NCBI GenBank assembly: GCA_964188305.1
Contig: OZ076903.1
Source of the DNA: Podarcis bocagei
Lineage: Eukaryota
Length of the DNA: 64,000 nt
Reading direction: 5' to 3' (one strand)
Below are positions 13,804 through 23,745 of the stretch, piece after piece. The stretch's first letter is position 1. Each line of letters starts with the position of its first letter. Under the pieces are notes generated by a model, which had not been told where the DNA came from, did not search any database, and saw only the letters and a list, made by a program, of their open reading frames with translations. A program made the translations under genes and the position numbers.

Positions 13804-15665
13804 ATGAAGTATTGTATGAATGAATGCACTTTCATGTCAAAACTGAAAAGCAAGTGTTCTACCAATGTAGGTTCCTTCTTAGTTCTGTGCTTTACTTTCA
13901 TATATCCATATTAACTTCCTCCACATTATTTACACAGCATTGTGAGGTGGCTGGTATACGGTTAATCAGAGCTCTGAAGGTGGTGTTTTTTTCTTAATGG
14001 CTGCAGTTCTTTCCTTGAATGGTCAATTCACCTTTATGTTATGTGCCTCTGTAAGAGCAAGCAGCATTGCAATGGGAATGAACAGAGACAAAATAAGCTG
14101 AAAGTAGGAGATGTAGCCTTTGTGGGTAGAATCTTCTGTTTGAAGTAGGAGATAATCTTCTGGGACACTTTCGAATCCTATAATTTTAAATGTGGGGTCT
14201 GCTAAACCAGTTTAACTAGGTAGAATGTTGAAGTTTACTTTCGTAGACCTATCGTTTGTTACAATGTTTGCAGGTAGATAACAGAGAATGGGACTTCCGG
14301 GGTGGTGCCATCGGCAATGGCGGACTCCCTCTGAACCGGAGGGACCAGCTCCGCGTGAAACGGGTCCTTTCCGCTGTGGCGAAGGGGACCCTTTTAGAAA
14401 TCACAGGCGGATGAAGCCTGTGACCGTGGGACTCGGTACGCACCCTTAGCACCCCCCCAACCCCCAAAGGAACCCACTAATGGGCTCCGAAGCGAAGAGG
14501 GGGAAGTGGCGCGGTGCTGTTAGTCAATTGCTTTTTCCGCGGAGCAAAGCCGCATAGCTGTTGCCGGAGAGCACTGCCTTTTTCCTGGGACAATTTGGCA
14601 TCTAAAATAATCACCCGTGAGTACTTAAACATTGAACAATTGGTCTGCGAATAACAACTGGCGATTAGAAAGGAATTGGACTTAAAAATTCACCTTAATT
14701 TGGTACTGAAATGGGAAGGTCTAAACAGAAAGTCAGCCTTCCGTTTCCTTGTAGTTAGAAGAAAGCAAAGATAACGTACACTAGAGCTTAGAAAATCACT
14801 TTTAAAGGATCTGTTTTCACCATTTAAAATTGTTGAACCCCCCCCCTCCGGTAGCAGGAGAAGAAGGGGGATCTTTTTTGGACTGTTTAAACCTGCAGAA
14901 GTGAGTTTAAAGTAAAGTAACTTTCCACCGTCCTGACCCTGGAGCGGGGTGTCAGAATTGACGTTTTGAAGCTCATTGACCAGAGACAAATGTTTTTGAC
15001 AGAATAGTTAAAAGAAGAGTAACATTGTGATTCCACTGTTTCCTTTCACATTTTAAAGGAACAAATATTGACAAAATATCTTAAAAAAAGAAACTTTGTT
15101 GCTATTGTCCTTAAAAGAAAGAACATCCAGAAGTTTTCCCCCTAGAGGGGGACTGTGAAACTGTAACCAATTCTAGGGAGCTTGCAGCTGCCACAGATTA
15201 CAACCGTGGGAAAGGACTTGTGACCTTGCAGGACAATGTTTTCAGAAGCACTGTTGGGTGCTTTCTGTAAAATAAATGCCCTATTGGATCAGTTAAGTCA
15301 GAAGACAGATTTGATGACTAATGCGGCCAGAGCATTTGAACAGGTAGTGGGAAATTATATGGAGCCCACCCAGGAACTTAAACAGGGGTGTGTCCTGACA
15401 GAGCAGATGAGAGAAGAGGATGTTGCAGAATCTTGGGCGCCAGAGATGGAGGGACTTTTGGCCCAGCAGGAAAATGAGCCTTTGGATTTGACAAATGAAC
15501 TTGGAAAAAACCAGATTTGGAAAGACAAAGTTTGGATTGATTTGGAAATGGGGGTTGGACTGACCCCCCTATGCAGGGATGTTTGGACTTTCCGAGTCTG
15601 GCAATGGGCCGTCAGAGGTTTGGAGCTGTTGGGACTTCCAATTTTGGAGGGAATTTGAAACATGT

Positions 15666-16491
15666 TGTCAGGGGCTCAGGAACAGAGGTACAGGGGAGAG
15701 AGGAAATGGAGAGCGAAGGGGAAGAATCTGAGGGCAGCATAGGGGAGTATGACAGTGGCCCGAGAGATTCCATGAGCTTCTCCAGCGAATCAGAAGATTC
15801 CCAGAAGGAGGCGCCGATGGTCAGGGCAAGGGGGGTCCCAGGGGAGACACACCAGAAACAAGGGGCCAGCGGGGACTCCCAAAGCAGCAGCGGGAGATCA
15901 GGACCAGCTTCCCCACCAGAGCGTAGTGGGGGGGGAAGAGTCCCATGTGTCAGGGCCAGTGTCTCCTCCAGCAGGGAGAGAAGATGAGTCAGGGCTGACC
16001 ACGCCTCTATCGGAGAGTGGGGGAACGGAGGGGAGGTCAGGTCCAGCTAGCCTCCCGAAGGGGGAAGCAGTGACAGGAGCAGTGTAACAGTCAGGAGGAA
16101 GGTTGCCGGCTGGGCGCGCGCGCCAAGTTCAAATGTACAGGCGTGTGGGACAGCAGAAAACCCAGATTGGGAACCAGGTCCTAAAGCCCGCCGGAGGCAG
16201 GGGGGAAGACTCAGGGGACTCGGCATCAGAAGAGTCTAGGAAGGGCGAGACCCCAGCTGACAGGCGGAGCCAGAGGAGGAAAGAGCAAAGGAAGAGGTGG
16301 AGCAAGGCTAGAGTCTTAAACTGGTGTCTGGGGGGAGGAGATTCAGACGGAGCCTCGGCGGTCTAGAGTTTCAGATGTAGAGCTGCACGCTGCGGCTGTG
16401 AAAGCGAAAATGAATTTCAATAAAGACTTTTGTATATAACAACGAACTGGCGTTGGTCCTTTGTGAGCTGGGACCTCGGGCAGCTCTGACA
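15666..16491 (+). repeat. 5' LTR (826 bp)
   Basis: Direct repeat of 21492-22288; contains AATAAA. Confidence 0.95.
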
Positions 16492-16545
16492 GTAAGCTCT
16501 GTCTCAAAAAAAATTTTTTTTGCGAGCTCACGAAGATAGGCAAAG

Positions 16546-17625
16546 ATGACTACAGAGGAGAAGGTGACAGAACTGCAAGAAGCAGTCACGAGGCTTTACG
16601 CAGAAGTAGCAGCATCCAGAAAGAGAGAAGAGGAAGCAGAAGCGCTCTGCCGAGATCTGCAAACCAGGTGGGAACGTTTGGGCAAGGAGGGGCTGCCAGG
16701 ACCCAAGCCAGAGGGAGTTGGCCTCGGGAAGAGGGGGGGGCAGCATCGTAGCCCACTTCGACGGGAGCCTGCAGCAGTATCCTAACTTCAGAGCAGACAT
16801 AGTTTTCGCGCTCAATTTGCTTCGGAAAGACTTTAGAGATGAGGAGGAGAAAGTAGGGTTCATAATAACTCATCTGCATGGGGAAGCTAAAGCGTGGCTG
16901 CGCAATTTATGGTGCGAAAATGATCCCGCCCTTCAAGACTCAAAAGCATTTATCAAGGCTATGGACGATTGTTTTCAATCAACGGTAGATGTGGATGTGG
17001 CCAGGAGGGAAATGCACGGGCTGAAGCAGGGCAAAGCCACGGTGAGACCATATCACTCCCGCTTTTTTGCGTTAGTAAATGTGCTGGGCTGGGAGAAGGA
17101 CTCCGCTGCCGTAAGGGATCTGTTCTGGGAGGGGCTAAATTGGGCCGTGAAAGATGAGCTGGCGAGGGGGGAGAGACCTAACAGTACCACAGAAGTCGTC
17201 CAGAGAGCGCTGGCGATAGGGGTACGCCTGGAAGAACACCCTTGGAGCAGGGATGAGGGACGTATGGCACGCACACCAGCCAGAACAACTCCCTTCGTAC
17301 CCAGAGAGACAGGGCGCGCACAATCCACGCCTCCACTGGGGGGGGGGGAGAAGAGCCGATGGAGATAGGTGGTGCCAGGGCTCAGACAGCGACCAGAGCC
17401 CAAACACCAGGAACAGTCAAGACGAAGGCTCCTAGAGGGAGCAGGAAGTGTTACATCTGCGACAGTGCACAGTACATGGCCAAAGAGTGTCCCCAGAGGA
17501 TCCAGAAGCACACTGCAGCCTCAGCAACAGTAAGGGGAGCAGTGCAGCAGGGGGAACAGCTACAGGGAAACGACGAAGCCTGGTTGGAGGCACAGGCACT
17601 TGGGCCCAGCCAGGTGAGTCAGTGA
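16546..17625 (+). pseudogene. Gypsy gag (frameshifts in G-runs at ~16735 and ~17342)
   Basis: N-terminal coiled-coil-like segment, FDG..KVGFIITHLHGEAKAW, LKQG, PMEIG, CxxC....Y....C knuckle (His to Tyr). Confidence 0.88.
17565..17614 (+). promoter_or_regulatory. -1 programmed ribosomal frameshift signal gag/pol
   Basis: G GGA AAC in gag register, pol in -1 frame, 7-nt spacer, then stem cctggttgg (17579-87)/ccagccagg (17606-14). Confidence 0.8.
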
Positions 17626-20600
17626 AGCAGTCCCCAGAGATTTTGCAGCCCACAGACCCCCTCCCACCCAAACCAGTGGTGCAACTCACCGCATCACTCC
17701 AGCTGCCCAATGGACTCACCCTGGAAGTCCCTATTACCATTGACTCTGGTAGTAATGCAGACTTTGTAGGAGTGGACTTCATCAGGCAACATCGCATAGC
17801 GCTCCTACCAGCCACGATGCCCCTAAACGTCGTCACGGTCGATGGCCGAGAGCTACTGGGTTGACAGGTGGTACAGCAAACACCGCCTATGGTAATGCAA
17901 ATTGGAAATCACCACGAAGTCATCAGCTTCAACGTCACCCACCTGTCGGACACGCCCATAGTGTTGGGCATGAGTTGGCTGGATAGGCACAGCCCGGCAT
18001 TAGCATGGTACCAGCGGCAATTGACCTTCTGCTCCTCCTACTGTGCAGAACACTGCATCCGGACCAGCCAGGAAGAGGAGGGGCAAGAGGATGAACAGCA
18101 GCTACACCTAGGCATGGTGCAAGCGGTACCCAACAAGTACAAGGTGTTTTTGGAGGTCTTCTGCGAGAAGGAAGCGGACAAGCTGCCTCCCCACAGGCCC
18201 TACGACTGCATGATTGACCTCCTACCGGGGGCGACGCTGCCAACTGGAAAACTGTATTCCATGTCTGAAGACAAACTGCAAGAACTCAGGGAGTTCATAG
18301 ATCACAACTTGAAGTGGGGATTCATCCAGGAATCCAAAGCAGTGGGGGGCAGTCCCGTGTTTTTCGTGAAGAAGAAAGACGCGCCCCAACGGAGACTGGT
18401 AGTTAATTACAGGATCATCAATTCCAAGACAAAGCCCACAGCATTCCCCATGCCCAAGATCGACGACCTGCTCGCGACAGTGAGGAAGGGACGAATCTTC
18501 ACCAAGTTGGATCTACGAGGGGCATATAACCTTATACGCATGCGGGAGGGCAATGAGTGGAAGACGGCCATGTTTACGCCTTTAGGCACCTATGAATATC
18601 GTGTTATGCCGTTTGGTCTGCAAAATGGCTCCCATTGTTTCCAAGCCTTCATGCACCACGTGTTAGCGGGCCTCCTCTACAAGAAGTGCGTATGCTTCCT
18701 AGACGACATCCTGATCTTCTTGGAATCGCAGGAGGCTCATGAGGGAGACGTCAAGGAGGTCCTGCAGAGACTACGGGAGCACAGACTTTACGCCAAACTG
18801 GAGAAGTGCCAGTTCGACGTGACGGAGGTGGATTTCCTGGGCTACAAGCTGTCCGACAAGGGACTCGCCATGGACAGCACCAAGGTCCGCTCGGTGTTGG
18901 ACTGGAAGAGCCCGTGCAATCGGAAGGAGGTCCAGAAGTTCGTCGGCTTCGCCAACTTTTATCGCAAGTTCATCAAGGGGTTCGCGAAGGAGACGGCGGC
19001 CATCACGGACACCCTCAGCTCCAAGAGGAAGAAGTTCACCTGGACGGACCAGGCGGAACAGTCTTTTCGGAGACTCAAGCGTCTCTTCGCGTCCAAAGAA
19101 CAGCTGCTACACGTGAACCCCAGCAAACCAATGAGGGTTGAAATGGACGCCTCGGATAGAGCGGTGGGGGCGGTCCTGTTGCAGCAAGATCCGCAAGGGA
19201 ACTGGAGGCCCTGCGCATTCTACTCCAGGAAACTCAGCAAGTCGGAACAGAACTACACCATGTGGGACAGGGAGTTGCTGGCCATTCATGCAGCCTTCAA
19301 GGCGTGGCGGCACTTCCTCACCGGAGCCAGACACACTGTGCAGGTCTGCACGGACCATAAGAATCTGGAGTACTGGCACACGGCGCGGTTCCTCAACCAG
19401 AGACATATCCGCTGGGCGGAGTTCTTTGCGGATTTCGACTTCCGGATAGAATACATCCCGGGGGACAACAACGTCATGGCAGATCCAGGAAACCGCAGTA
19501 TCTCGAGGAAGCGGCACCGGTGGCAGCCAAACACATTTTTGCACCGAAAGCGTGGGCATGCGCGTCAGCCACCGTGGACCTGGACGCAGTGCGTCGCACG
19601 CTGCAGACGGATTCGCACAATCCAAGATGGAGGAGGTGCGAAGAGGCACAGCGAAGGACGACGAGTTCCAGATACGCGACGGACTGCTCACCCGCAAAGG
19701 GGCTCTCTACGTGCCGGGAGACGACCTCCGCGTGAAAGTCCTGCAGCAGTTACACGACGCGCCCAGTGCTGGGCACTTCGGCGAGGACAAGACGGCGGAA
19801 TTAGTAGCCAGAGACTTTTGGTGGCCCCAGATGAGGGGAGAAGTCGCGGATTACATCTCTAGGTGTGACACATGCCAACGGGCCAAACCAGTGCACAGGA
19901 AGCCAGCGGGACAGCTAGAACCGCTACAGACGCCGCTCGAACCGTGGGAGAAAGTGGCCCTGGACTTTGTCACAGATCTGCCCAGCTCGTGAGGCAAAAC
20001 AGCGGTACTAGTGGTCGTAGACCTGTTCACCAAGATGGCGCACTTCATTCCTTGCGCGAAGGTGGCCACAGCGGAACAGACCGCCAAGCTGTTCATAGAC
20101 CACGTGTTCAAAGTTCACGCCTTACCATGGTCCATCCTGTCCGACCGGGGTCGCCAATTCATCTCGAGCTTCTGGCAGAAGCTGCTGGGCATCCTGAACG
20201 TCAAGATCAACTTAGCGTCGGCACGACACCCGCAGACCAACGGACAAGCGGAGAGGGTCAGCGCCATCATGCAGCAGTACCTGCGATGCTACGCGAATCA
20301 ACAGCCCTCGACCTGGGTGGACTACCTGCCGCTGGCCGAGTTTGCCTACAACAACACGAAGCACGGGTCTACAGGGGTGACACCGTTCTTCGCCAACAAT
20401 GGGCGGCATCCCAGAACCTTCCCGGGGTTAGAGACGAAGGGGGAGGGGGAGCCACGAGGGGGAGCTGAGCACTTGGCAGCAGAGTTACAGGAGGTCCACG
20501 AGCAACTCCGAAGGCACTTGGACCTAGCAAAACACGCCTACAAAATGCAGGCAGGCAGACAGGCACAGGAGAGTCGGGGAAGACATCCAGGTGGGGGACT

Positions 20601-21220
20601 GGGTCTGGTTAGCAGCCCAGGCAGTGCCGGCCAGAACATTAGCTAAGAAGAAGCTCAGACACAAGCAGCTAGGGCCTTACCAAGTCAAGGCACAGATCAA
20701 TCCAGTGGCCTTCCGGTTGACACTCCTGGAGGGCTCCAGAATGCACCTGGTCTTTCATAGGTCAGTGCTCACGCCCTACAAGGAACCCCACAGGTTTCAG
20801 GCGCCAGGGACCGCACCACACCCACTCAGAAAATCGCCAACGGGGGAGGAGTCACCGAGGGCGGCGCAACTCAACGAGGCCACGGAGATTTTAGACTCGA
20901 GATGGGGGGAAGAGGGAGTTGAATATCTCCTCGCCAGGGAAGGTACCCCGGCCAGCGCCAACAGGTGGGTACCGTACTATACCGTGGAGGAGCACTACCT
21001 CAAAGACGAGTTCCATGCACTCTTCCCACACAGACCTATGCTGGCAGATTATTTCGACGACTGGCTTTTCACACCCACACTTTCAGCCAGGGATTCTCAT
21101 CAGCTGAGGAAACGGCGCCAGAAACAAGCTCCCCAGAGGGATCACTCTCAGGGTTTGCCACAGACCGCTCTTATTGGTGGGACAATCAACCGGAGGTGGG
21201 GTGGAGCGGGGAACTGCTAA
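17568..21220 (+). pseudogene. Gypsy pol: protease (IDSG), RT (FLDD), RNase H (MDASD, DRELLAI, TDHKNL), integrase (HHCC, LDF/SDRG/QAE), chromodomain
   Basis: ORFs 17448-17864, 17868-19862, 19552-19992, 20011-20646, 20591-21220; stops at 17862 and 19990, several frameshifts. Confidence 0.93.
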
Positions 21221-21491
21221 GGGGGCCCTTACACACAGCATCACCCGAGGTAACAGGGGGAGGGAAGGACATGGACACGTTGGGGGAGGATCCTGGGTTC
21301 GAGCATGAATGCAGAGAGATGGAAGCAGAGGAGATCGACGTCGACGAGCCCATTACGGGCTGGCAGGATCCAGCTGGTCAACTGCACACCAGGGGGAAAG
21401 AACGGTATCCCGCACTCACCCCCACAGCACTGGAGCACCTGGAACCCGCACCCGAAGAGGGGGAGGGGGAGGGGGGCTTCGAGGGGGTGGA

Positions 21492-22288
21492 TGTCAGGGG
21501 CTCAGGAACAGAGGTACAGGGGAGAGAGGAAATGGAGAGCGAAGGGGAAGAATCTGAGGGCAGCGTAGGGGAGTATGACAGTGACCAGAAAGATTCCATG
21601 AGCTTCTCCAGCCGATGGTCAGGGCAAGGGGGGGTCCCAGGGGAGATGCACCAGAAACAAGGGGCCAGCGGGGACTCCCAAAGCAGCAGCGGGAGATCAG
21701 GACCAGCTTCCCCACCAGAGCGTAGTGGGGGGGAAGAGTCCCATGGGTCAGGGCCAGCGTCTCCTCCAGCAGGGAGAGAAGATGAGTCAGGGCTGACCAC
21801 GCCTCTATCGGAGAGTGGGGGAACGGAGGGGAGGTCAAGTCCAGCTAGCCTTCCCGAAGGGGGAAGCAGTGACGGGAGCAGTGTAACGGTCAGGAGGAAG
21901 GTTGCCGGCTGGGCGCGTGCGCCAAGTTCGAATGTACAGGCGCGTGGGACAGCAGAAAACCCGGATTGGGAACCAGGTCCTAAAGCCCGCCAGAGGCAGG
22001 GGGAAGACTCAGGGGACTCAGCGTCAGAAGAGTCTAGGAAGGGCGAGACCCCAGCTGACAGGCGGAGCCAGAGGAGGAAAGAGCAAAGGAAGAGGTGGAG
22101 CAAGGCTAGAGTCTTAAACTGGTGTCTGGGGGGAGGAGATTCAGACGGAGCTTCGGCGGTCTAGAGTTTCAGACGTAGAGCTGCACGCTGCGGCTGTGAA
22201 AGCGAAAATGAACTTCAATAAAGACTTTTGTATATAACAACGAACTGGCGTTGGTCCTTTGTGAGCTGGGACTCAGGCAGCTCTGACA
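21492..22288 (+). repeat. 3' LTR (797 bp)
   Basis: Roughly 20 substitutions (mostly CpG transitions) and a 28-bp deletion relative to 5' LTR, counted by eye. Confidence 0.95.
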
Positions 22289-22991
22289 CATGTCTTAAAA
22301 TACCACATGGAGTCTAGTCTGGACAATGGGAAAGGGGCTGATTTGTTGAAAAGGGTCAAAAACACTACCAAGCTGGAGTTCCCATGAGTGAAAGGAAAAT
22401 ATGAAGAAGAGCTGCGGAAGGGACATGGAAGAGATTTGACGGCCTCGTATATAAGATCACCAGGTTAATGTGCCAGACTAATGGGATAAAACAGACTGAC
22501 AATCCCGGGACCGGGGGGAGGGGACACTGGAAGAAGACTGGGTTGTTTTTATTTTTATTTTTATCATTAGAAATGTTTTATGAACGTTGGAAAAATGTTG
22601 AAATGAAATTACTTGGCTCTTGTAAAAATGTTTAAAGAATTAGGTAAAAAGGTAATGGTTATGAGAAGCTGGTAAAAATAAGATTTAAGTCTTAAGTTTT
22701 AAGGTTTTTTATAAGATAAGATGAAAATAGAATAAGGTAATGTAATGAAAGAATATTGTGAATTATGGAAAGGATTTGCTGTGACAATTATTAATCAAGA
22801 TACAAGAGATGGGAGGATGAGGAGGTCATGGAAAGAAGGTAATGAAAGTGGAGAATTTGAAAATGATGGTTTTATTTTTTCATTTTATTTTTCTGTTTTT
22901 GTCTTTTTTCTTTGTAATTTTTAAAACAAATTCTTTTTCAATAAATATCATTTTTAAAAAAAAAGATAACAGAGAATGGTTAAGGAATATA

Positions 22992-23264
22992 CAATGGCAC
23001 CTCGGGTTAAGAACTTAATTCGTTCCAGAGGTCTGTTCTTAACCTGAAACTGTTCTTAACCGGAGATACCACTTTAGCTAATGGGGCCTCCCACTGCCGC
23101 TGTACGATTTCTGTTCTTATCCTGAAGCAAAGTTCTTAACCCGAGGTACTATGTCTGGCTTAGCAAGAGGCCCCATTAGTGAAAGCACGCCTCTAGTTAA
23201 GAACAGTTTCAGGTTAAGAATGGACCTCCGGAATGAATTAAGTTCATAACTAGAGATACCACTG
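22992..23264. mobile_element. Tigger/mariner-like MITE with long inverted arms
   Basis: TA flanks, ~100-bp imperfect inverted arms; paralog at ~49836-50107. Confidence 0.75.
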
Positions 23265-23311
23265 TATTAGCTTTCGCACTTGCTGAAGAATGGAACAGAG
23301 AAGGTGTCTAT

Positions 23312-23745
23312 TGTCAGGGAACTGCCATCGGTGCCAGAGGGAGAGAGCAAGCTGCAGAGGGATTCCAGAGAGCGTCCCGGGATTGGGAGAGGCAGCCCAT
23401 CTTCTGGGGAAGAGAATCAGCGTAGCACCAGTGGAGAAGGGGGGCAGATGGGGGAATCGACGAGGCGGTCCCATGACTCCTTTCCGGGGACCAGCGGGGA
23501 GAGTAAGGGTCCTCCGCTGCCTACGCCCTCCTTGCGCAGAAGGCTTTTGAGCAGAGAGAGTAGGAGGAGACTAGGCGTCAAAGAGCTTCTTTGCTGGAAG
23601 AAGTTTAAGAAACGCCACTGACGGATTCTGCCAGCGTTTGAGACAGCCATGGGTGAGTGGCTGTCCGGACAGAAAAGGTTCACTCAGGCAACCCAGCCAG
23701 GTGTCGGCACCGGCTTGCGCACGAGCAACCCCTAGAACCATTACA
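23312..23745 (+). mobile_element. Solo LTR of a second LTR (probably Gypsy) family (434 bp)
   Basis: TGTCA..TTACA ends, TSD (t/c)ctat; empty sites gtgcctatgttagg at 34921 and 50147. Confidence 0.85.

Follow-up and report, generated by a model that had tools for sequence, protein, structure and literature searches.

The window analysed here is a stretch of 64,000 nucleotides (nt) from Podarcis bocagei (contig OZ076903.1 of assembly GCA_964188305.1), and contains at 15666-22288 a decayed copy of a Ty3/gypsy retrotransposon with a 5' long terminal repeat (LTR; 15666-16491), a 3' LTR (21492-22288) and the target-site duplication CATGT. The subject is an open reading frame (ORF; 20965-22164) that runs across the polypurine tract of this copy and through the U3 part of its 3' LTR. 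In the Ty3/gypsy lineage of lacertid lizards to which the copy belongs, pol very likely extends into the 3' LTR and encodes there a conserved tail of the integrase: the frame is continuous with pol in related copies, its U3 part is under purifying selection and the position of its stop codon is fixed.

Pfam domains follow one another in the order gag/Ty3 capsid, reverse transcriptase, RNase H, Integrase_H2C2, rve and SH3_Tf2-1, as in Ty3/gypsy elements (Metaviridae); a match to a protease was not obtained in the Pfam scan of the element. Its features are as follows.

15661-15665, + strand, target-site duplication CATGT, 5' copy (read directly; same five nucleotides at 22289-22293)
15666-16491, + strand, 5' LTR, 826 nt, TGTCAGG...CTCTGACA (blastn and MAFFT alignment with the 3' LTR)
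16718-17368, + strand, gag (capsid) ORF (Pfam Retrotrans_gag, E=8e-09, plus Ty3_capsid)
17868-21086, + strand, pol, in at least four frame pieces (Pfam domains and ORF list)
17868-19862, + strand, reverse transcriptase and RNase H (Pfam RVT_1 and RT_RNaseH)
19552-19992, + strand, integrase zinc finger (Pfam Integrase_H2C2)
20011-20646, + strand, integrase core (Pfam rve with 26.5 bits, under the cutoff of 32.6 bits)
20591-21086, + strand, SH3-like and chromodomain-like segment (Pfam SH3_Tf2-1 for the SH3 part)
20885-21035, + strand, divergent chromodomain-like segment at the integrase C-terminus (three-sequence profile against PDB)
21455-21491, + strand, polypurine tract region, inside the ORF and abutting the 3' LTR (from the sequence)
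21492-22288, + strand, 3' LTR, 797 nt, TGTCAGG...CTCTGACA (direct repeats and alignment)
22217-22222, + strand, polyadenylation signal AATAAA in R (CAATAAA invariant in all LTRs reaching the site; locus L004 unalignable there)
22289-22293, + strand, target-site duplication CATGT, 3' copy (read directly)

Both LTRs have termini of the TG..CA type (TGTCAGG..CTGACA), and their borders were revised by one base by means of blastn and a MAFFT alignment of the two copies. These differ at 22 of 795 aligned nt (2.8 %) and by five indels (28, 1, 1, 1 and 1 nt) within the ORF region. The U3 frame of the 5' LTR is broken by three private 1-nt indels (ORF pieces 15571-15987 and 16103-16366), as expected for an untranslated copy. 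Comparison of the 5' with the 3' LTR was rejected as a test of selection, since differences acquired after insertion are neutral whatever the ORF did.

The ORF at 20965-22164 comprises 399 codons on the + strand (codon starts congruent to 1 modulo 3). The first-pass annotation, made from the sequence alone, had described it as reading through the polypurine tract and U3, and this is confirmed: it crosses 21455-21491, enters the 3' LTR at 21492 as xxT GTC AGG and stops with TAG, 44 nt downstream of a TATA-like TCTTAAA and 53 nt upstream of AATAAA. Judged against 2000 dinucleotide-preserving shuffles, the ORF is longer than composition would give (P=0.001 when 21221-22288 is shuffled, P=0.006 when only the LTR is), with the caveat that T makes up only 12 % of the U3 ORF, so that open frames are cheap. 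A further caveat concerns the initial 41 codons (20965-21086), which represent an out-of-frame overlap with pol; from 21087 on, the ORF is the natural continuation of pol. Parts of this region and the sites bearing on its frame are listed below.

21086/21087, + strand, frame break of the window copy (DNA and protein alignment; 10 nt fewer than in the related loci L004 and L006)
21087-21491, + strand, internal part of the integrase tail, about 135 codons, net charge -25 (in the relatives P0004, L006 and P0007 continuous in frame with the chromodomain-like segment)
21493-21879, + strand, acidic part of the tail encoded by U3, rich in Ser/Glu/Gly, 129 codons, net charge -15 (dN/dS and composition)
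21880-22161, + strand, conserved C-terminal module of the tail, likewise encoded by U3, 94 codons, net charge +7 (dN/dS; contains the motif at 22048-22122)
22112-22118, + strand, TATA-like TCTTAAA within Val-Leu-Asn codons, putative promoter element (T[CA]TTAA[AG] in 13 of 13 LTRs)
22162-22164, + strand, stop codon TAG of the tail ORF (read directly; column shared by all 13 LTR copies)

Because 10 nt are missing at 21086/21087, pol of the window copy (frame 2) is disconnected from the tail (frame 1): the pol frame matches the relatives up to ..DDWLFTPT.S, and the ORF frame does so from ..GFSSAEE on. The earlier suggestion that a single frameshift near 21090 would fuse the ORF to pol is borne out by this deficit. 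Within the internal tail, the polypurine tract, which includes a GAGGGG repeat at 21457-21475 (TRF), is read as Glu/Gly codons. Most invariant residues of the tail alignment (A2) fall in the 94-residue C-terminal module, which follows the pattern ..VRRKV.GWARAPSSN..EPGPKAR..SASEESRK..RR[ST].R....RKRWS.A..LNWC and carries basic clusters such as RRSQRRKEQRKRW.

Compared with all other families, the 3' LTR of the window lacks 28 nt after 21610 and has one G too many in the run at 21628-21634, both changes being private to it; this G is absent from almost every contig and read of the family. Since the net change is -27, the frame downstream of 21634 is kept, only the patch 21611-21634 being read in a shifted frame. 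Gap and compensating G lie 18-24 nt apart and keep the frame open in an otherwise decaying copy, which may reflect coincidence or gene conversion.

Relatives were found stepwise, first by querying proteins in a word-indexed search with the part of the ORF that follows pol, then by two further searches. The word-indexed search yielded three ORFs on short Logan contigs (P0001-3 from loci L001-3), whose amino-acid identity in alignment A2 is 52-65 %. P0004, P0005 and P0006 came from a profile search of 1.84 billion representatives, which returned, for the tail sequence, no relatives except LTR copies; the third search added the UniRef entry P0007 of Podarcis muralis. At the DNA level the matches proved to be related LTRs. 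In L002 and L003, a 5' LTR precedes the primer-binding region and gag, while L004 holds the chromodomain-like segment, the tail and an LTR. L005 and L006 stem from the chromosome-scale assembly GCA_947686815.1 and contain four solo LTRs (L005) and a full element plus one further LTR (L006).

Continuity of pol into U3, a check proposed in the first-pass annotation, was observed directly in L004, where a single frame, that of P0004, leads from the chromodomain-like segment through about 130 tail codons and the purine tract, read as Gly/Glu codons, into the LTR and stops there. P0004 has the same C-terminus as the window tail, ending ..LLNWCRGGTDSEGTSNI. ORF 9406-10083 of L006 likewise links the chromodomain-like segment to the tail, and P0007 (701 aa) comprises the integrase zinc finger, core, SH3 and chromodomain-like segments and the tail up to the LTR edge. 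A polyprotein frame that runs into the 3' LTR is thus present in the lineage, and also in the window copy save for the break at 21086/21087.

Selection on the U3 frame was assessed in an alignment of 13 LTR copies (the 3' and 5' LTRs of the window, L001-L004, four of L005 and three of L006). Codon columns were scored without sequence repair, skipping gapped codons and dropping private insertion columns of 1-2 nt, and dN/dS was calculated according to Nei and Gojobori (NG86) for 8 representatives. The acidic U3 part has a median dN/dS of 0.28 (range 0.16-0.35, 28 pairs) and the C-terminal module one of 0.26; values are 0.12 for the chromodomain-like segment and 0.50 for the internal tail. The other two + frames yield 0.75-1.6, and the frame extended past the stop into R-U5 yields 0.78, with 267/250/286 differences by codon position and hence no periodicity. 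Within U3, third codon positions show a twofold excess of substitutions (P=0.003, 1e-5, 4e-6 and 3e-6 in four disjoint pairs), and the same four pairs show no such excess in R-U5. Of the invariant columns, 107 fall on first, 93 on second and 35 on third codon positions.

Indels follow the same division. All nine with a length divisible by three (54, 6, 3, 3, 3, 45, 63, 3 and 6 nt) lie in the coding part, where six of them separate families and each indel of other length is private to one copy or one subfamily; in R-U5, 8 of 8 events are of other length. The stop column is fixed in all 13 copies, be it as TAA, TAG or TGA. A dN/dS near 1, random-phase indels and in-frame stops had been named beforehand as signs of a non-coding U3; found were a dN/dS of about 0.27, in-phase indels between families and a conserved stop position. 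Together with the frame continuity in relatives, these values also uphold the earlier proposal of a long integrase tail in U3 that ends in a conserved basic module.

Promoter sites at the DNA level, named beforehand as a possible explanation of the motif's conservation, do not suffice for it: coding and promoter-like sequence do overlap at TCTTAAA, as had been suspected, and the DNA around it is nearly invariant, but this comes on top of the codon signal and does not stand in for it. From the acidic part to the C-terminal module dS falls from 1.24 to 0.82, which like the invariant DNA run fits overlapping constraints from coding and core promoter. The last 60-100 nt of U3 probably serve both purposes.

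Several observations weigh against a pol-encoded tail in the 3' LTR. None of the elements is fully intact, the window copy and L006 carrying several pol frameshifts and L004, at the start of its contig, two stops shortly before the chromodomain-like segment. The homologues were partly found as open ORFs, which disfavours stops in the sample but would not enrich it for third-position changes. Three copies at two loci (L005d, L006_3 and L006_5) share two identical 1-nt frameshifts in the U3 ORF, so that this subfamily must have gone on spreading although its tail was broken, presumably by mobilisation in trans.

L005:15486-16243 (- strand), L006:4202-4956 and L006:10006-10760, LTR copies with the shared frameshifts (alignment)

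Also on this side, Pfam assigned no family to the tail, to P0004 or to the ORF of the solo LTR described below, and a look-alike search of the C-terminal module in the ESM Atlas gave no usable match or cluster. The AlphaFold2 model of P0004 (alignment of 9 rows) is poor, with a mean pLDDT of 46, a pTM of 0.18 and only short helices, at 113-122 and 396-403; such a model is compatible with disorder, for which it is not evidence. RNA-seq coverage amounts to 90-160 on the LTR versus 0-5 on the internal tail and roughly follows the number of DNA copies, so that it is no sign of expression from full-length elements. Piles of transcript starts or ends were not seen among the RNA-seq reads, and transcription start, poly(A) site and U3/R border therefore remain inferred positions.

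The same RNA data yielded two further observations. In run X23, first mates fall mostly on the + strand in several LTR bins between 21482 and 22257 (e.g., 88.7 vs 5.6), which would suggest one-sided transcription of LTR copies. Variant sites in the reads mainly mark departures of the window copy from most other copies.

The second LTR of the region belongs to another family and lies about one kilobase downstream of the element.

23312-23745, + strand, solo LTR of another family, TGTCAGGG...CATTACA (flanks TCTAT/CCTAT)

Its insertion is real, since 23306 and 23746 are adjacent in one contig of a related species (X1), as at an empty site. As described in the first-pass annotation, it is open from its first base in the phase xxT GTC AGG, namely for 102 codons (23313-23618) up to a stop at 23619-23621. 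The annotation had concluded that this frame and the tail ORF, from two different LTR families, share a motif. Indeed, both LTRs have identical first 8 nt (TGTCAGGG) and an identical phase, and both ORFs stop exactly 124 nt from the LTR end (22164 to 22288; 23621 to 23745). The solo ORF has a similar layout, with a Ser/Gly/Glu-rich part followed by a basic end (+11), and the 25-aa match between 22048-22122 and 23523-23597 is the best gap-free match of this length between the two ORFs and is also picked by hhalign.

Regarding this match, its coordinates, the lack of gaps and its 9 identities were reproduced, but its significance was not. The BLOSUM62 sum of 40 lies 1.5 standard deviations above a residue-shuffle null of 32.2 +/- 5.3 (P=0.096), BLASTP for the motif pair returned E=78, and hhalign assigned the same alignment a probability of 1.2 %. 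A hidden Markov model (HMM) of the tail family scored the solo ORF with E=2 among 1262 six-frame pieces of the window, and the solo LTR matches only 6 of the 15 motif residues that are invariant in the tail family. The length of the solo ORF is ordinary for its composition (P=0.28 in shuffles), and the homologue search of the protein collection revealed no ORFs related to its frame. DNA likeness between the solo LTR and the tail family was not detected by nhmmer, a global alignment judged against shuffles being uninformative, and blastn retrieved no other copies of the solo LTR from L005, L006 or the window. In about half of the contigs of the solo-LTR family, an extra C follows 23614, five bases before the ORF stop. 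That the solo LTR represents a second Gypsy family with a U3-encoded integrase tail ending in a related basic, Arg-rich module is therefore doubtful, and chance composition is the leading reading of the 102-codon frame.

The idea that solo LTRs would act as scattered coding cassettes is likewise not supported: frameshifts occur in the element's own 5' LTR and in several solo copies. At 5' and solo LTRs the frame comes in open from the flanking DNA, and an ATG within the LTR is missing in two of the four families compared (L001 and L003). ORF copies in such LTRs would be untranslated by-products that decay.

As to the U3 frame of the element itself, some retroviral genes lie in or overlap U3, such as MMTV sag and HIV-1 nef, which are separate ORFs expressed from spliced mRNAs. 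Could the tail be such an accessory protein (an ORF3) with its own start or spliced RNA? The constraint falls from the chromodomain-like segment (dN/dS 0.12) to the internal tail (0.50), some copies have a Met codon just inside or before the LTR (MESE.., MDVRGSG), and RNA reads are far denser on the LTR than on the internal tail. However, the frame is not an independent ORF in the three relatives mentioned, in which the tail is in frame with the chromodomain-like segment or integrase with no stop between; the start is not conserved given the lack of an in-LTR ATG in L001 and L003; and the excess of LTR RNA parallels the higher DNA copy number of LTRs. A separate accessory protein is accordingly regarded as very improbable. 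Like sag and nef, the 3' U3 of the lizard element would be protein-coding as well as promoter/enhancer, so that each LTR copy bears coding sequence, but unlike these genes its codons form the in-frame end of pol.

An accident of composition, with the purine-rich, T-poor U3 being non-coding promoter/enhancer DNA, would agree with the 12 % T of the U3 ORF, with an antisense strand of the window LTR that is also open for 223 codons, and with the solo LTR, whose frame composition explains in full (P=0.28). Yet composition cannot produce a twofold excess of third-position changes, a dN/dS of 0.16-0.35 in one frame, inter-family indels exclusively in multiples of three and a fixed stop, nor does it explain why the coding signals vanish directly past that stop; moreover, the antisense frame is not kept open in relatives (longest runs of 35 to 223 codons), and this explanation can hardly be upheld. 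Selection on the antisense frame (ORF 21378-22103, 241 aa), mirrored in the sense strand, is the least credible of all, for although the wobble-sharing antisense frame also shows a dN/dS of 0.33-0.44, sense values are lower in 6 of 6 pairs (0.20-0.31), and the sense frame is continuous with pol and has a conserved stop, whereas the antisense frame is interrupted in most relatives.

On the preferred reading, i.e., an integrase tail encoded by the end of pol, the polyprotein would run about 360 codons beyond the chromodomain-like segment, of which about 135 are internal (including the polypurine tract) and about 223 would take up the whole of U3 and probably the first bases of R. Genomic RNA of LTR elements extends from the U3/R border of the 5' LTR to the R/U5 border of the 3' LTR and thus includes the 3' U3, which is therefore readable by ribosomes translating pol. 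Since the stop lies 53 nt upstream of AATAAA, it falls inside the transcript. The product would be an integrase with a long, probably disordered tail of about 260 acidic, Ser/Glu/Gly/Pro-rich residues followed by the basic module. We infer that the tail serves nuclear import and/or chromatin tethering of the integration complex.

The segment preceding the tail was not matched by Pfam Chromo even at E up to 10. A three-sequence profile of 20885-21035 had HP1/CBX chromodomains as all of its 12 best PDB matches (CBX5, E=0.006). At the positions which we take to form the aromatic cage (Trp and Phe of LKWKGF), Arg and Thr are found in the alignment with CBX5. Judging from these residues, the segment may be no reader of methyl-lysine.

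Coding sequence in an LTR has a precedent in plants, where the LTR of CRM group A chromoviruses encodes a C-terminal putative targeting domain of the integrase (PMC3059260). Like these, the lizard element is a Ty3/gypsy element, putatively of the chromovirus type, with a polyprotein ORF that passes through the polypurine tract into the 3' LTR. Unlike them, it resides in a vertebrate (lacertid) host, its LTR-encoded part of about 223 codons occupies practically the whole of U3, it has kept a chromodomain-like segment upstream, and the tail has no detected similarity to known families. The lizard element would work like CRM, while membership of the CRM clade is unlikely given the vertebrate host. 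In the literature searched, a coding region reaching into the LTR was described only for plant CRM elements. To our knowledge, the other U3-encoded proteins are those of retroviruses, where they are products of separate genes. New here are the vertebrate host, the use of the whole U3 and the novel tail sequence; the class of mechanism has a precedent.

A similar layout is known from yeast. In Ty1 integrase the C-terminal module is large and disordered and includes a small targeting domain, and long disordered integrase C-termini bear, besides a nuclear localisation signal, a short targeting domain near the end (PMC8487063, PMC7459421). The long C-terminal tail of the lizard element resembles, as a functional analogy only, the modules of Ty1 and Ty5 integrases; both are Ty1/copia elements, whose module is internal instead of LTR-encoded and has no sequence similarity to the lizard tail.

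Viral proteins are known to bind the acidic patch of the nucleosome by arginine anchors (PMC10606924). As in HMGN2, the CENP-C motif, KSHV LANA and PFV Gag, a short Arg-rich element (in the lizard tail RR[ST]xR followed by basic residues and Trp) stands at the end of a probably disordered region in a protein working on chromatin, a resemblance in pattern only; the Pfam scan gave no match, the likeness being confined to RR[ST]xR...RKRW. One may speculate that RR[ST]xR...RKRWS.A..LNWC acts as an arginine-anchor tether that replaces the cage-less chromodomain, and that several unrelated Gypsy families of lacertids encode such modules independently in U3, but this joint reading is improbable.

With respect to the genomic surroundings, L005 (7500-19500; OX395127.1, about 3.95-3.97 Mb) holds an array of about 12 kb of telomere-like CCCTAA repeats with four independent solo LTRs. 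These belong to at least two subfamilies, occur in both orientations and have their own 5-bp duplications (CTAAC, CTAGC, GTAAC and CCAAC). The insertions could reflect targeting to telomere-like arrays or tolerance therein; the flanks of other copies of the lineage are not telomere-like.

Between the element and the solo LTR of the window, an AT-rich low-complexity region (22540-22980; 25-36 % G+C, short T-rich tandem repeats) is followed by a very high-copy short interspersed repeat (22937-23324), with a summed contig depth 10-100 times that of the LTRs. RNA-seq reads over this repeat exceed 1000 per bin for either strand, and its 3' edge meets the solo-LTR insertion site at 23312.

Public databases already contain entries derived from LTR/tail ORFs, i.e., P0005 and P0006 (NCBI, GCA_947686815.1), P0007 (UniRef, recorded as an integrase-like protein) and P0008 (NCBI/UniRef, Podarcis lilfordi). 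All four are transposon fragments, one of them is named 'Gypsy retrotransposon integrase-like protein 1', and two represent frameshifted LTR frames. An open or nearly open frame of 200 codons in every 5' and solo LTR is thus picked up by gene predictors.

For the lineage itself, the findings mean that U3 evolves jointly under constraints from coding, promoter, att site and polypurine tract, and that the conserved basic end of an acidic tail is a defined module of a vertebrate integrase. Selection on codons within the LTR affects LTR-based dating and family classification. If the arginine-anchor reading were true, LTR sequence, promoter and integration-site preference would co-evolve as a unit, and the insertions in the telomere-like array of L005 would be a footprint of this.

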